Below are positions 55,600 through 63,890 of a stretch of DNA of 64,000 bases, in pieces. The stretch lies in NCBI GenBank assembly GCA_907165135.1, contig OU015568.1:2976001-3040000 (forward strand). Direction: 5' to 3'. This stretch comes from Oikopleura dioica (taxonomy: Eukaryota > Animalia > Chordata). Position numbers and translations under genes: made by a program. How positions within the stretch are numbered: position 1 is the stretch's first letter; each line of letters starts with the position of its first letter. A model generated the notes under the pieces. That model saw nothing but the letters and a program-made list of their open reading frames with translations. It had not been told where the DNA came from and searched no databases.

Positions 55600-57126
55600 T
55601 CAAATCATCTTGACGAGCTGACCATCGCCTTGGGTTATCTCATGAATTTGCGCTTTCGAACGGAACTCGCAGATATTCAAATAAGCCACTAAAGTTTAGT
55701 TTAAAATTTATTAACCAAAAGATACTACATTCAAGAAGACGTTGACCACCATTTAGTTCGAAAGAATTTCTTCCATGCAGCATTCTTCGATTGTTGAAAA
55801 CTTGAAAAAAAATTCCAATAACGATCTTTCAAAACAGAAACTCACCAAGACATTCACCAGCGTCAAGTTTTCTGATTGTTTTTGTCGGAGACTCGTTTAC
55901 TTTCTCCATGAAAAATCTGTACGCCTTCAAGTACTCGCTCGTCATCGAAACATTTTTGCTTTTTCCTTCAAATGCTGGTCCCCAGTTGATCCTCGTGATG
56001 ACTCCTTCGCCGTCAACGACGATATGCGGCTGTTCCCATTCGATGTAGACAGGATCGTCTCGATCCCAGTGGATTTTGATATCGGACTGGAGTCTCGCAC
56101 AGAACTTTGAAGTGATCTGGCGAGCATTTTCGAACCTCTTCCGCAACTTCGAATGCGTCGATCATGATTGATTCGCCACCTGAAAAAGAGAAATTAGACT
56201 TTTTCGATTTTTTCATTCTGCACATTAGTTCTCCAGAAATAGACTAGCTCATAGGAAATATTTGTTGAAACAATTCAGACAGAGTTTTGAGCAAAAACAT
56301 GAACGAATAACGCTTCAATAAAGAGGGCAAATTTTATCAATAAGCTCACTCAGATAAGTCAATTAATTAGTTTCGACAAAACTTTCGTCTTTTTCAACTA
56401 AATTTTTCCCTACCTTCGACGCATTCGTCGTTTCTTCTACAAAGCATGAAAGAAACTCCTGGTGGCGATTCCATGTAAGGATAGTCCATGTGCGGGCCGA
56501 GATAGATGCCCGAAAGCGCAATATTTATCGGATTCGGCCCATTCTTGATTTCCTGCGTCACTCCGTAAAGAGTCGTGACAGGTGGTGCAATCTTACTCTC
56601 GCAGCCTTTGATCACGCAGTAGCCGTCCTCCATCACATTTTTGGTAAGCGCGTGTTTTCCTGCTTCGTTTTCAAGCTCCAAGAAATCAACTTCGGGATTC
56701 GTGATTCGCTCGTATATCATTTTCGTCGCTGCTTTTGTTCGAGCGACTTCGTCTCTGACAAATTTTCTGAGAACTTCTCCCGGAATCATGCCCTCATGGT
56801 CCTCTCCTTTGATGCGGAATTTCAGGACGTCGTCAACGAAAAAAGCCGCTTCCAATTCAAGATCGCTAGGCCAGGAAAGCGGAGAAATGGTTTTTTGACC
56901 CGAGCCTTTTTGTCGGCAATCGCCGCAGTGGCAATTGAATCTTGAAATTTTCATCTCTCTTTTTGCCTTATTTAAATTCAAGGTACCATAGCCAAATTGT
57001 CGAAAAACTATACCCAGAAACATTTCCATTTGTTCGAAGAGCCAGATTCGCGTGATCAGCTGAAAATTGATTGACTCTGAAAAATCGTTGAAAACATTGT
57101 CTCTTGAAAATATTGAGCATTGTCAT
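55600..57126 (-). CDS. Gamma-butyrobetaine-dioxygenase-like 2OG-Fe(II) oxygenase (BBOX/TMLHE family); one-base frameshift at 56074-56077
   Basis: N-terminal Zn motif FNCHCGDC, HxD motif GPHMDYPYMESPPG, GGESIMIDAF, FNNRRMLHGRNSF; basic mitochondrial-type leader. Confidence 0.85.
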
Positions 57127-57974
57127 TTTTGAATATGGTAGAAAAATTCCTTTCCCGGCGGTTTTATGTTGGCCGAATTGAATCCTAAGGGACAAAAGTT
57201 CTCCTGAAATCCAGCCAAATCCAGTTCAGAGGCAACTTTTGCTGAAACAATTTGCAAAAAGTTTTGAGTCAAAACTTAATAGCATAAATATGAGGGAATA
57301 GAGCGTTCGTTAAATTTACAATAACCAAGTTTCGACATTTACACACGAGCTTTGCCGTCCTTAAAATCATTTAAATTGTAATTTTTAGGTTAATTTACCT
57401 GATGATTTTGATAGCTTGTTGGATAAAATGACGGTTATTTTTGAAAGAAAACAAGCCATTTTCTTATAAAACTAGATATAAAAACTAATCTTTATTGTTG
57501 AAAAATTTAGAAAGATGAGAGTTGTTTTAGGACGAAAGGTATATTTTCGAGTTTCTAGAGCTCGGGTCGATCTGAGCTTGTTGTTGCCATAAATGCTCAG
57601 ATTACTAGAGACCAGAAAACGCGGCGCAGCAGACGCAGGATTTTGCCGAAAACGCTGCCAAAATGGGCAGAGACTCGTTTTCGCGCTTCAGCAAAACTTC
57701 AAAAAGATTCACAGTCGGAATATGGGCGAACGGTAGGACGATTTCGCGGACGAAATATGTCTAAAATTATATTTCTTGAGAAGATAATAAAGACAAAGAA
57801 GTTTTACACCCTCATGCGGAGCTGTTTAGGATGAAACTTATTAGGGACTTCAGGAAGAGTCTCAATTTACCAAAAAATGCAAGGAAACCTGATTTTCAGC
57901 ATAAAAGATAATTTCGATCTAGAATTTTGCACCATTTTTGAGGCTCAAAAAGATTGCTAGAAAACTTAACAGAA

Positions 57975-60900
57975 ATGGAAGCAGACGTAGAAACGCCAAA
58001 GTACCACGCATCAGACATAACCGACCAGGCAGGATTTCCACTCCCCAAATGAACCCTTTTCTGTTCCATCTGGGCGAAGTGTAAATCCGTGCAGGCAAAA
58101 CGCTTGAAATTGCTGCAAGACAACCCGACAGCGCTCGTCAAATTCAACACCTTCAATAGGCGCAAGGGTAAGTTCTCTTCCTTGATGTCAGCCTGCTCAA
58201 CCGCTTTTCTAGACAAACAAGAGAACGCGGACCTAAATCAAGTTCAAAAAAGTCGACTTCATCGTGTTCGATTCAAGTAAAATCGATCAAATAAGTCCGT
58301 TAGTAATTCCTTTCTTCAGTCTCTCAGCATTTCCGCCTGTCTCTTACATCGCGAACGACATTGCGGATTCGAGGTTTTTCAAGAAGTTCATGAAGATCAT
58401 CGTTTATCTGAGTACATTGACTCTGATTTTGAGGACATCCCTCATTGTTGAAGGTATTCTCCTTCATTTTTGAACCTGTTCATTCGACAATTCTAGCGGA
58501 AAGATCATTCGAGGTGGCAAAGCCAAAGAGTGTTCCGATGGACATCAACTTCTGGTTCTTCAACACGATCGTGCATCCAGACTTTCCATCAACCACCATC
58601 TATGATAGATTTCCTTCCGAAATGCTTTCGACGATCAGACTAACGGGCGAACAACAAAGCGAGGAATATCCGTATTCGAATGACACGGATTCAAACGGCA
58701 ATACGGTTCATTCCTGCGATTTCGGACCGGATGATGGCTGGCCATTATGGGCTTCAATCTTTACAACATTCTCTAAAAGTCTGTCAGCTTGGGGCAATAG
58801 CAATGGTTCCGCCTATCCTCGATCTGCATGCGCACCGATTATTGGTAATATTCAAAGGTATTTCGAATTATGTACTCCGTGGAACATCACTTGAATAATT
58901 CAGGGAGATCTGGGCGCTGTACTACAGCGATTTCATCAAAGTGGTCGAATTGATCGTCAACTTGATCTTTACCATCGAATTCTTTCTCTACCAAGCCGAC
59001 GTCATTCTCGACTGGAACCCGTCGCGCTACTGGGGAAATGCTTTCAATCAGATGGAATTCGCCATTGTCGTCACTTGCTGGGTCTCTTATGCGATGGATT
59101 ACTTTGCAACTTCGTATTTCTTTCAATCTTTCTTCCATCAAAGGTATTTTTTTAACTATAAAAGCCAACTAGAGACTCCCAAAATAGAGTCCCTTTTATA
59201 ATCAGCAAATAATCTTTACAATTTTCTAGCCATATTGGAACCTTCGAAAACATATGCGGCGAGAACAACGACTTTCAAGCTACATTTTCTGAAGGATCTG
59301 GCTCGTTCACTTACGATCTCTCAGAACTCTGCCGCAAAGCCCGCGAAGAGCGAGACACGCCCGTCTACTCCGCCACAAATCCATTCTCAACGATCCTCTA
59401 CACGATTTTCAACCGACAAGAGGAGCATAAAAAGATTCAAGAGCGATTCACAGGGTCTGCAAATGGACGATATTGCGATGGAATGAAGAAATGGGGCTTG
59501 GAATCGGAAAACGGCTGGTTCTATACGTACCTTTGCGAGCACTCTGACCCCTATGAAAATAATTTCATGGGATTCATCGGCTACTACGGCTTGACTTCGA
59601 TTATCAAGAGCTTCCGTTTCATCAAAATCGTTTTCTTGGACACTCAAGTTAGACAGATTCTCATGGGTCTCCGAAAAGCCTTCAAACAGATGAAGATTAT
59701 CATCCTCCTAATGGGTCTTCTTTTGGTCTTCTTTATCTTCTTGTTCACCAGCTTTTTTGAAGTCCGCAACAACAAGCTTCGTAAGTAAAAATTTTAGTTC
59801 TTTATCATGCTACTTTCATTTTTTCACAATAAATTTTTAGAGAACAAATGGACATATGAAGATTTCTCCGCTGACGCTATTCGATATCAGCAGCTAAAAC
59901 CGGGTGAGGATGATGGTTTTGTCGTCTTCAGCGGTTTTATTGATATCTACTGGACTTTCGCGACGCTTTTTCAAATCCTCACTCTCGATCAATGGTCAGA
60001 AACCTTCGACAAGATCCAGCGCGGCCAGCTCGAGCACATTTACGACAACCAAACCTCTTTCTGCGACCTTCATTCCTTCCGATCCCTGACTGGCTACAAA
60101 GAACGATACGCAAGTGAGCAGTACGATTGGGGAATGAGCGAAATCACGAGCTACATTTTTGCCATCGCTCTTCCTCTGATGTGGCTTTGGCTTGCAAATG
60201 TTACTTTCAAGAACTTGATCACTGGCATTATTGTCAACTCGTTCCTTGAAGACTCGAATGAAAAGCGATACGATCAGACGGAAGAAATTATTGAAAACGA
60301 AGTCAAAGAGCTGGAAAAAGAACTGGCCGGCGAGTCGCAGTATGATCGAGTTCCGATAAGTATGATGGAACCAATAGGCTCCGCTGAATCTATGAAAACA
60401 AGTCAATCTGGCAAAACTGACATTGAGCTACAGGAATGGGGTCAGAATTCGACTAAGCTTGAAGCAAAAGAAGGCGGACTTTTTTACCCTTATTGCAGAG
60501 TGTTAATAATACGATCAAAACACTTGAAGAAAGAGCCCTTTTTATGCGAGAAAACTATTGGAAACCACATCGATGGCCACTATTCAAGAAACATTTTCCA
60601 TCTCTTAGTGAAATGAGCGAGAACTTGTGGCAGAACTGCTCCATCAAAGGCATTTTCGGACTCATCAAAATTGGGTTCAAGAAGATCTGGAACGCGCTGA
60701 TCAATTGCTGCAAAAAGAAAGAAAAGGTCGAAGACAGGATTCCTGATGCTTTTGGACATCATATTCGATCGTTTGGAGGAATGACGCTAGATATTGAAGC
60801 AGCTTCGGAGTCGACGCTTTTGAGAAGTGATGCGGATATGCCAAGCCACACGCAATACACTTTCGACTCTCACGAGCCGGACGATTCTGATGATGAAAAT

Positions 60901-61595
60901 TTCCTCTCGCTCCGAAAGAGTCGCGAAGACGGGCAAGGCAACAGATCCGCCATTGCATCGTCTCACATGATGAAGCACCCAGCGATTACAAACAGCCATC
61001 TTGCCCAAATGATCCAGGTTTTAACATTTTTAAATACCTTTTCTATAAATTTCTAGCGCCGAAAAAGTCTGATGAGCCACGCATCAAAACAAAGTTACGA
61101 ATCTTCTTCCTCTCTCGATCCTTATTCGAAACATTCTCTGTTCTCGAAAGGATCGGGTGGCAAAATTTCCGGCAAAAGAAGTGGCGACTCGCATGCAAAA
61201 ATATTTCCAAGCGATCTACTCAATCCTGAGAAAAACCTCAGCAATAACGAGTCATTCCTTACCGAAACGAGTCGATCTACTCAAAAAAGTCATACTACTG
61301 GCCAGGGAGATAATCCAGATGAAGTCGAACACGCCAACTGGGAGATTTTGATTCAGATTCACGAAGACAGGATCAGGAAAGGGCTCAAATTTTGACTAGT
61401 TTTTGCCATTTTCACTGTTGAACTTGAAAATTTGAAACCCGAAAAAGCGGAACACCACGAGATACGCTCTGGCCACAAGACTCGCTCTTTGTCTACCTTG
61501 AATTGATGGAAAAGCTTCAAGAGAATCTTCAAGAAAGAGCTGAAATCATGCGAATCTTTTCCACTCTTGTCGTCGACGGAAATGATACAAGCTAA
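57975..61595 (+). CDS. CATSPER2: CatSper2-like sperm cation channel alpha subunit
   Basis: Pre-S1 ALVKF...SRLHRVRF..PPVSYIA, pore FATLFQILTLDQW, S6 MWLWLANVTFKNLITGIIVNSF and C-terminal LWPQDSLFVYLELMEKLQENLQER match the CatSper2 pattern as recalled (TLDHW; WPRDSLFRYFELLEKLQYNLEER). Confidence 0.85.
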
Positions 61596-61680
61596 TTATT
61601 TCCCGTCGAAAATTATATCCTGCCATTTATTCAATGAATAATAATAAGTATAAAATGTTTTTAAAATCGTATAATTATGT

Positions 61681-63890
61681 TTATTGAAAGAAAATACTTT
61701 TTGATAGCAGCAGATTTGTGTCTTTAACAAGATCATTTTTTGTTGGGTCTCCTCGGTAAAGGTCAAGTAGCTAAAAGTCGTGAGCAGACTTTTTCAAATA
61801 AATGATTACCTCTAAGAATTTATCTCTTTCGTTGTCATAGAAATTTCCGGTGCACCAGTCAGTTCCGAGGTAGCCTTGTTTTTCGTAATAGCCTCCGATA
61901 TCAATGGGAATTATTCTTTTTGTTTCATAGTAGGCTTTCGCTGATCCACTTTAAATTGGTTTTTGAGAAACTCCTAAATTGAGAGAACCCTTTTTCAAAA
62001 ACCAAAACCCATAAACAGGCCCCATTCGCTGAAAAATCCTCGTGTAAAGCTTCCCATTTTCATCCCCTGGAATCGGCGGTAGAACATGTCCTTTGCTCTT
62101 TTGCTCCTCAATGTAATTAAGAATCTCCTCTATGATTTCAGAGTAGGCTTCTGGATTTTCTGAATCAGGACCGACGAGATTCTCAATTTCAAATGGGTCC
62201 TCCTCGAGATTGTACAAGCTGTATCCGTCCAGCAGGACTTTTTTCTCATAATCGTCAGCAACAGTAATCGACTCCGAGAATACTCTTTCCCAGTAGCTGC
62301 TCGGGCGATCGAAAAATCTTCGTAGCTCGCTGTTTACTGTTACTTTCTTGGATGCATTTGTCTTTTTTAGAAAAGATTTTTACAAAAAATTGCACTTAAA
62401 GATTTCTTGTCCGATCAAAATTATTGCATCCGTTCCTGGTTTGTCTGCATTTTCATCGCATTTAAAAGTATTTACCTTCATATTGAAGTTCATAAATTTA
62501 TACCTTCCATATCTAACAGCAATCTGATCCTCCCACCTTTGCTTCTTCTCATTGTAAAAATCCAAAACGCCGTAGACAAAACTCTCCCTCTTATTCTTCA
62601 CCCATCGATTTTCAAGTTCTATTTTTCTCGAAATTCCGTCCATGCTTGAGTCTGGCTCGATTCCCGCGAAATCAAGAAAGGTGGGGACCCAGTCGACGAT
62701 GTGGAAGGGATAGTTCAACCTTGATCGTGCGAATTTTCTAGTGGTGGATATGAGGAAAGAGGGGCTAAGAACACCGCCCTCAAAAAGAGAGTTTTTAAAT
62801 CCCTTGTACGGGTAGTTGCATGCTCGTGGGGTGTAGTCAAGCTCATCATAATCAACTGCGCTCGAGTCGGGACTTCTTCCGCCGCCAAATTTCTTCACAG
62901 CGCCTCCGTTATCCGACTGAAAAACAATCAGCGTCTCTCTATGTTTGTCCTTCTTTGCTTGTTGGTAAATCTCTCTGACAGCCGTATCGATTTGGTTGAC
63001 AGCTGCGAGGTGTTCAGCCCGAGTGTAAGCGATTTCAGGGTGCTTTTCTTGGATTCTAGCGATGAGCTCTTCCGGCGCTCGGGTTGGCTCGTGAGGCGCG
63101 TTGAAAGCGAGATAGACGTAAGCAGGCGTGTTGGTCTTCTTTGATTGCTTGAGAATTTCAACTGTTCGATCGCGAAACAGATCTGTAGTCCATTCTCCAT
63201 CAGATTGTAAGTCAAGTTTGTGCCGTTCCTCTGTATTGTCGTAGAAATCATGGAAAAATGTCTTTGATCGTTTTATGTAATGTCCTCTGTAATCCACAGC
63301 GCCGGAGTAGTGGCCATAAAAAGTGTCGAAACCTCGGTTTGTTGGGAGATACGAGCTGTTGCAAACTCCTAAATGCCATTTTCCAACGGCGTGCGTGTCG
63401 TAGCCGACTTCTTTCAAATACTCAGGAAGGGTTTTGTCATTCGTATTCATTCCGAAGGGGACTTCTCGGGCGATCGGAAAGGATCCCATGCCGCTTCGGA
63501 AAGCATAGCGGCCAGTGAGAGCCATAGCACGGGAGGGGGAACACCGATGGGAGGAGTACATTTGCGTAAACTGAGGGAGTGAGAAAGAGGTTGTTCGACC
63601 TGACTTACTTGGGTTCCATTTTTAACGAGTTTATCCATAAACGGAGTTGATTCTAGCCCAACATTGTTCCAACCAACATCTGCCCAGCCCAAATCATCGA
63701 CCAAAATATACACTTCTCTGTTTTCAATACTCTATCTCTAGATATGAAAATTTGGGAAATAAAGGAAGATTTTTTTTAATTTGATAGAAAACAGTCCTAT
63801 ATTTGGTCTTTCATCCTGACTTTCTTCTGCAAAACTCTCTGTAGTTAAAAATGAAAGAATAAGTGCCAAACATGTCCGAATTTTTTTCAT
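61681..63890 (-). CDS. Arylsulfatase, ARSB/I/J-like
   Basis: Signal peptide MKKIRTCLALILSFL, RPNIVYILVDDLGWADVGW, formylglycine motif CSPSR...TGRY, GKWHLG, RGFDTFYG, FQSDNGG, YPYKGFK, LYNLEEDPFE. Confidence 0.93.

Follow-up and report, generated by a model that had tools for sequence, protein, structure and literature searches.

This study concerns a stretch of 64,000 nucleotides (nt) from the appendicularian Oikopleura dioica (GenBank assembly GCA_907165135.1, contig OU015568.1, positions 2,976,001 to 3,040,000 of the forward strand), referred to below as the window, and a gene within it that, as read from its sequence, is an ortholog of CatSper2, a pore-forming subunit of the sperm calcium channel. 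The core of the channel, S1-S6, is intact, and four of the outer loops that join its helices are enlarged, together adding approximately 300 residues. In window coordinates, the whole coding region spans 57663..61595 on the + strand and comprises 13 exons with 3,222 coding nt, corresponding to 1,073 codons plus the stop. The gene model was obtained by reading the three + frames over 57.3-62 kb with phase tracking, and both of its ends were set by a spliced transcript contig together with orthologs; phase book-keeping revealed no in-frame stop within the model. The gene is collinear with two relatives: L001, a 12-kb genomic contig from a marine metagenome that retains every exon, including a 147-amino-acid (aa) S1-S2 loop exon, and P0018, a transcript-derived protein of 826 aa.

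All segments of the gene described here lie on the + strand. Five short 5' exons (57663-57732, 57781-57853, 57953-58028, 58095-58167 and 58213-58276) encode the cytoplasmic N-terminus with a CatSper2-type pre-S1 region, as indicated by sequence motifs and transcript joints. The following exon (58320..58453) completes the N-terminal region and adds helix S1, a hydrophobic segment with 68% amino-acid identity to L001 and 50% to P0018. The S1-S2 extracellular loop occupies a separate exon (58497..58857) with an open frame and GT..AG borders on both sides, after which helices S2 and S3 share an exon (58904..59143) that is 75% identical to L001 and in which an exon-wise Pfam scan returned a weak Ion_trans match (58905-59141, E=1.6e-3). 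A single exon (59230-59780) then carries the S3-S4 extracellular loop (59230..59587, an open frame) and, read from the sequence, S4, the S4-S5 linker and S5 (59588..59780; 83% identity to L001 over S4-S5). Another single exon (59841-60433) begins with a lengthened S5-pore turret, the pore helix and the selectivity filter T-L-D-Q-W (59841..59995, filter at 59981-59995), continues with the pore-to-S6 extracellular loop (59996..60151) and helix S6 with the family motif F-K-N-L-I-T-G-I (60152..60247), the last two placed by sequence reading and, for S6, alignment, and ends with the start of the tail; the same exon-wise scan gave a second weak Ion_trans match here (59843-60358, E=1.4e-5). The long cytoplasmic C-terminus (60248..61595) comprises the remainder of this tenth exon and exons 60499-61017, 61057-61376 and 61448-61595.

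The most distinctive property of the encoded protein is the size of its outer loops. The S1-S2 loop measures about 130 aa, and its exon of 361 nt provides 119 whole codons with 2 cysteines and 2 N-glycosylation sequons (NDT and NGS); given this length, skipping of the exon would break the reading frame. The S3-S4 loop is likewise about 130 aa long, of which 119 aa with 4 cysteines and no sequon are encoded by 59230-59587, and the pore-to-S6 loop comprises 52 aa with 1 cysteine (60062-60064) and 1 sequon (NQT). These three loops had been proposed in the initial annotation, and their open frames were found at the same coordinates and with the sizes expected; for the S1-S2 loop the 2 cysteines were recovered as described, and the several glycosylation sites proposed there proved slightly overstated. 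A fourth, smaller insertion was found in the S5-pore turret, which exceeds that of Ciona by about 14-26 aa. In comparison with CatSper2 of ascidians and mouse, the lengthening amounts to approximately 110-120 aa in the S1-S2 loop, 90 aa in the S3-S4 loop, 15-25 aa in the turret and 25-35 aa in the pore-S6 loop. By the topology read from the sequence, the insertions are extracellular, and they contain cysteines.

The assignment to CatSper2, likewise made in the initial annotation, is upheld by several lines of evidence. When P0018 was compared with all solved chains in the PDB, only CatSper2 was matched at E<=0.01 (7eeb_B, E=1.3e-6; 9ubw_B, E=3.8e-3), and the strongest stretch of the alignment with 7eeb_B was the pre-S1 region, which is specific to this paralog. 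Its N-terminal region aligns with mouse CatSper2 residues 14-131 and its S2-S3 part with residues 145-196. In the full-length orthologs, the Ion_trans domain is recognized with far lower E-values than in single exons (P0018, E=2.2e-12; P0057, E=1.1e-16). In addition, a family profile scored 178 bits on mouse CatSper2 (7eeb_B) and 38 bits on CatSper4, a comparison that is partly circular since the profile was built with Ciona-type sequences; CatSper1 and 3 were absent from the best 60 PDB matches of this profile. The pore exon and the S3-S4/S4-S5 exon, each searched alone against PDB sequences, matched no CatSper chain. Furthermore, the N-terminal motifs EVLHP..FRMKLIRDFR, ETPKYHASD and NPTALVKF are common to the Oikopleura gene, P0018, P0055-P0058 and P0007, and a C-terminal L-W-P-x-D-x-L-F motif followed by a helix (exon 61448-61595) is also found in P0054-P0057, P0006, P0007 and P0014. 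All 8 sequences compared have T, L, D and W at the same filter positions, and the filter aspartate has been described as absolutely conserved across CatSpers (PMC2572835). The charges of S4, K-x-x-R-x-x-K followed by R (59588-59660), are kept in the orthologs. Mouse and human CATSPER2 (7EEB chain B) resemble the Oikopleura protein in their single-repeat architecture of six transmembrane (TM) helices, in alignable pre-S1, S2-S3, S4-S5 and S6 regions, in a T-L-D-x-W filter and in a C-terminal W-P-R-D-x-L-F motif with its helix. The proteins differ markedly in length, with 588 aa in mouse CatSper2 and 1,073 aa in Oikopleura.

Relatives of this protein are rare in sequence collections. An exhaustive search with the pore exon retrieved only 14 proteins at E<=1e-3 among 1.84 billion representatives, comprising the same species' exon open reading frame, fragments with the pore-S6 insertion and its invariant cysteine, and three normal-length proteins, including Ciona savignyi H2Y4N6. 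A word search with the S3-S4/S4-S5 exon among proteins of 100-320 aa gave no match, and a scan of metagenomes with the pore alignment yielded only four short contigs, one of them known already. By cluster look-up and word searches, P0018, P0054 (652 aa), P0055 (965 aa), P0056 (977 aa), P0057 (974 aa) and P0058 (325 aa, N-terminal part) were obtained. These proteins and L001 are termed appendicularian-like here because in their N-terminal motifs they resemble the Oikopleura gene far more than ascidian-type proteins, a label that reflects sequence resemblance. On the contig of P0018 (L006), the 826-aa frame is followed by a second frame (2649-2987, 112 aa), which is probably the missing C-terminal part of P0018, cut off through intron retention or a frameshift; the 826-aa protein is then probably truncated at its C-terminus. 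An exon-sized fragment (P0002) of the relative found in L001 is named 'general stress protein CsbA' by one source, evidently a mis-annotation produced by a prokaryote-style pipeline on a eukaryotic contig.

Comparison with the nearest relatives outside the loop-bearing group indicates that the insertions are specific to one lineage. These relatives, the Ciona savignyi protein UniRef100_H2Y4N6 (P0006) and the ascidian-like P0007, share N-terminal motifs, a T-L-D-H-W filter and the C-terminal motif with the Oikopleura protein, and possess none of the four insertions. The distance from the end of S1 to the S2 motif is 135-149 aa in loop-bearing proteins and 26-27 aa in Ciona and P0007; the corresponding values are 123-128 and 36 aa from S3 to the S4 motif, 75-85 and 59-61 aa from S4-S5 to the filter, and, from the filter to the S6 motif, 70 aa in the Oikopleura gene and 59-66 aa in its relatives against 35 aa. 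In mouse CatSper2, S1 ends at about residue 131 and S2 starts at about 145, and S3 ends at about 196 and S4 starts at about 209; by the alignment of P0018 with 7eeb_B, the S1-S2 and S3-S4 loops of the mouse protein are thus roughly 15-20 aa long, in agreement with the earlier statement that these loops are short in mammalian CatSper. With Ciona savignyi, P0007 and mouse as the outgroups compared, the insertions are, at the level of sequence, an appendicularian-like feature. The suggestion that such loops might be common to most invertebrate CatSper2 proteins does not hold for Ciona savignyi and P0007, with cnidarian, echinoderm and amphioxus sequences lying outside this comparison. No paper on CatSper in appendicularians was retrieved from the literature library searched. 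P0007 itself (L008:2001-3740) is a CatSper2-like protein of 579 aa with short loops. Its gene is one intronless frame on a eukaryotic contig of 908 kb (ENA ERZ22157276) and may have arisen as a retrocopy, or it may reflect an intron-poor lineage.

Transcript evidence indicates that the insertions belong to the messenger RNA (mRNA). In a marine plankton metatranscriptome, five contigs matched the gene at 95-99% identity, and one of them runs unspliced through 59288-59454, within the S3-S4 loop. Among 20 differences between contigs and gene, 18 are synonymous, including all four in the S3-S4 loop. In addition, P0018 and P0054-P0058 are all transcript-derived, and in each of the six the reading frame is unbroken and the same insertions are present wherever the loops are covered. 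The contigs of P0018 and P0057 hold frames that continue without introns for approximately 3 kb each and therefore represent spliced mRNAs. The concern, raised with the first description of the loops, that the insertions might be spliced out is thus answered by orthologous mRNAs that carry both voltage-sensor loops in frame. Judged from these reading frames, the insertions are translated and shared with related plankton lineages.

The same contigs document several of the introns, which are 39-99 nt in size. Clean joints were found at 58028/58095, 58167/58213 and 60433/60499, and a further joint (59780/59841) comes from the loose end of a plankton contig. The joint 57853/57953 is also listed in a plankton contig; it is weaker, the stretch between its two sides being flagged as not known. 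Of the 12 introns, 8 have GT..AG borders, 1 is GC..AG and 3 are GA..AG. The GC..AG intron (58029-58094) and one GA..AG intron (60434-60498) correspond to clean transcript joints once the stated ambiguity of each joint is shifted, a second GA..AG intron (57854-57952) corresponds to the flagged joint, and the third (61377-61447) is a putative one, placed by homology only. In L001, a 42-nt GT..AG intron (L001:5410-5451) lies precisely between the filter Q and W codons, and none is found at 59990-59995 of the Oikopleura gene; this intron has therefore been gained or lost between close relatives. Both flanking genes are on the - strand. The one at 56394-57029 contains a TauD-type dioxygenase fragment (E=3.9e-5, short of the Pfam cut-off), and the one at 62380-63561 encodes a sulfatase with an SGSH_C domain (E=1.9e-35).

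Comparison among the loop-bearing sequences indicates that the loops are constrained. Amino-acid identity to L001 is 61% in the S3-S4 loop and 67% in the pore-S6 loop. Non-synonymous divergence from L001 is 0.25-0.35 per site in the loops and 0.28-0.35 in the two voltage-sensor loops, whereas the proportion of synonymous differences (pS) exceeds 0.7 and is saturated, so that a dN/dS ratio is not computable for most regions. As far as sequence divergence can tell, the loops are under purifying selection. In 7 sequences whose loops share only 13-25% identity, four positions of the S1-S2 loop (P13, C73, W98 and C111) and six of the S3-S4 loop (F73, G75, C82, Y100, C102 and S105) do not vary, and the pore-S6 loop has a cysteine common to all 8 sequences compared. 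Furthermore, the two voltage-sensor loops together contain six cysteines in every full-length transcript, distributed as 2+4 in the Oikopleura gene and P0018 and as 3+3 in P0055-P0057; in L001 the split is 4+4. Three cysteines in each loop cannot all be paired within single loops, and at least one bridge between the loops is therefore suggested, which would place the two loops in contact. The cysteine of the pore-S6 loop would then be an odd seventh, which may be free or bonded to a neighbouring subunit.

No known fold was recognized in the loops. Pfam searches of every exon and of both voltage-sensor loops gave no match in the loops, and the S1-S2 loop had no match among PDB sequences. Profiles of the loop families retrieved nothing credible from the PDB and no CatSper auxiliary chain, and an ESM Atlas feature search with both loops returned no usable match. 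Structure prediction with AlphaFold2 was applied to the P0018 voltage sensor with both loops, using an alignment of 8 rows, and gave a mean predicted local distance difference test (pLDDT) score of 56.6, with the S1-S2 loop below 45 and the S3-S4 loop at 50-77 and modelled as a hairpin with helices. For the Oikopleura S3-S4 loop, predicted from 7 rows, the mean score was 59.8, and the model shows a hairpin (residues 16-29) and four helices (31-41, 51-65, 77-87 and 95-104). The two runs agree on the hairpin-plus-helices arrangement of the S3-S4 loop, for which the P0018 and Oikopleura sequences are 25% identical, and this lends weak support to the reading of that loop as a folded alpha/beta module. 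With these low-confidence models, Foldseek searches of the PDB, VIA wide searches and Atlas shape searches produced no match of note (best Z 3.5, best TM 0.35), from which a new fold does not follow.

An immunoglobulin (Ig) V-like domain was considered separately for the S3-S4 loop. A phmmer search of the S3-S4 exon against the PDB returned 22 weak hits (E 0.24-1.6), all of them antibody light-chain V domains, with an alignment over loop residues 23-114 that showed the pattern C...RF.GS...Y.C. However, P0055-P0057 lack the cysteine corresponding to the first Ig cysteine, the S3-S4 family profile no longer finds any antibody, Pfam V-set is silent, and both AlphaFold2 models are mainly helical. 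At the level of the tests run, the Ig reading is refuted, and practically no credence is left to it.

Taken as a whole, the evidence is probably best explained by a CatSper2 with conserved, translated outer loops that would form a disulfide-stabilized crown with a structural or regulatory role. The two voltage-sensor loops would be stabilized by disulfides and would lie against each other atop the voltage sensor, forming together with the adjoining pore loops an extracellular crown on the CatSper2 quadrant. Such a crown could contact, or change the way CatSper2 contacts, the neighbouring pore subunit and any canopy subunits of this lineage; anchored as it is at either end of the S3-S4 paddle, it could also bias the movement of the voltage sensor. 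On the sequence evidence, the role of the loops is most likely structural or regulatory.

The mouse complex offers a frame for this proposal. In its structure (7EEB), the four canopy subunits stand directly above the pore tetramer as a large extracellular mass, and each is anchored by one helix beside a voltage sensor, as stated for beta with CATSPER4 (PMC13484710). Given a canopy in this position, approximately 250 extra residues on that face would have to engage it in another way or else take up a place left empty. In the mouse complex, epsilon reportedly sits beside CATSPER2. Like the canopy subunits, the Oikopleura loops would occupy the layer above the tetramer to which extracellular mass is supplied; unlike them, they belong to the pore subunit itself and not to separate single-pass proteins that carry large ectodomains, and no sequence similarity between the two was detected. 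Ciona has been reported to possess beta and gamma and to be without delta, epsilon, zeta and eta (PMC10652287). Short loops are nevertheless found in the CatSper2-like protein of Ciona, and subunit loss alone therefore does not explain the insertions.

Several points weigh against the crown proposal. The S1-S2 loop changes rapidly in evolution, and even close relatives are separated by large indels in it: the Oikopleura and L001 exons differ in length (119 versus 147 aa) and are 38-49% identical, the higher value applying to the alignable part. The pairing of cysteines and the contact between loops are suggested by cysteine counts only. The folded state of the loops is a prediction, made with the low AlphaFold2 confidence given above. 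In addition, three oligo-dT bulk RNA runs labelled as this species (X5-X7; approximately 1.5-1.8 billion letters each) contained essentially no reads over 57300-61700, a scarcity in keeping with expression limited to a stage or sex, or with a strain difference, and none of the runs and contigs examined contained RNA over 58329-59287, which includes the S1-S2 loop exon of this genome.

Some of these points favour a rival account, in which the loops are tolerated, largely unstructured expansions of the channel surface in a fast-evolving lineage, maintained in frame and devoid of a specific role other than leaving the channel undisturbed. The low confidence of the models, above all for the S1-S2 loop, would be expected under this account, as would the failure of Pfam, PDB, Atlas and fold searches to find a known domain; the 28-aa length difference and the low identity of the S1-S2 loop also contrast with the 70-83% identity of the TM core in the same relative. 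Tolerated expansion does not readily accommodate the Cys, Trp, Pro, Phe and Gly positions that stay invariant in loops of such low identity, the constant number of six loop cysteines in full-length transcripts, or the proportion of non-synonymous differences (pN), which is well under pS. Moreover, the loops have been kept across lineages whose proteins are approximately 35% identical overall. We regard this account as unlikely.

The initial annotation had suggested another reading, namely a built-in ectodomain that replaces or remodels an auxiliary subunit or senses a ligand or egg signal. In the form considered here, the ectodomain would take over from a missing canopy subunit, such as delta or epsilon, or receive an egg-derived or environmental cue coupled directly to the voltage sensor. 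The loops do sit where the mouse canopy overlies the pore tetramer (PMC13484710), and delta and epsilon have been reported as not found in Ciona (PMC10652287). In voltage sensors generally, the S3-S4 loop is mechanically coupled to S4. Against replacement of a subunit stand the short loops of the Ciona savignyi CatSper2-like protein, according to which the loss of delta and epsilon, if tunicate-wide, needed no such loops, and the lack of similarity between the loops and any solved chain, including the auxiliary chains of 7EEB. As an explanation of the insertions, this reading appears quite improbable. Stated for the lineage, the idea is that the appendicularian CatSper2 has formed a disulfide-linked ectodomain of its own from the two voltage-sensor loops, with a contribution from the lengthened pore loops, and that this domain stands in for a canopy subunit that was lost or acts as a receptor whose occupancy is signalled straight to S4. 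In this form it is speculative and, in our judgement, rather unlikely; if true, it would provide a voltage-sensor domain into which a module for binding a ligand or partner is built. Finally, an artefact of the gene model, with retained introns or mis-joined frames posing as loops, could appeal to the missing RNA reads of this genome over the S1-S2 loop region, but has a negligible chance in view of the in-frame loops of orthologous mRNAs, the exon that cannot be skipped in frame, the conservation of splice sites and frames in L001 and the purely synonymous differences in the S3-S4 loop of the transcript contig.

Few ion channels described to date rival CatSper in complexity, and according to current views the canopy on its extracellular side guides assembly and perhaps also gating. 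The variant described here is new within a channel family that is already known: a natural CatSper2 whose voltage sensor and pore bear approximately 300 additional residues on their outer side, kept across a whole plankton lineage. It bears on the share of the extracellular layer for which separate subunits are indispensable, and on whether a domain tethered to both ends of the S3-S4 paddle changes voltage sensing. Loop deletions combined with sperm assays are feasible, since Oikopleura dioica is used as a laboratory animal, completes its life cycle quickly and has separate sexes. Even if the insertions are merely tolerated, they still constitute a clear case of growth of voltage-sensor outer loops without gene loss.

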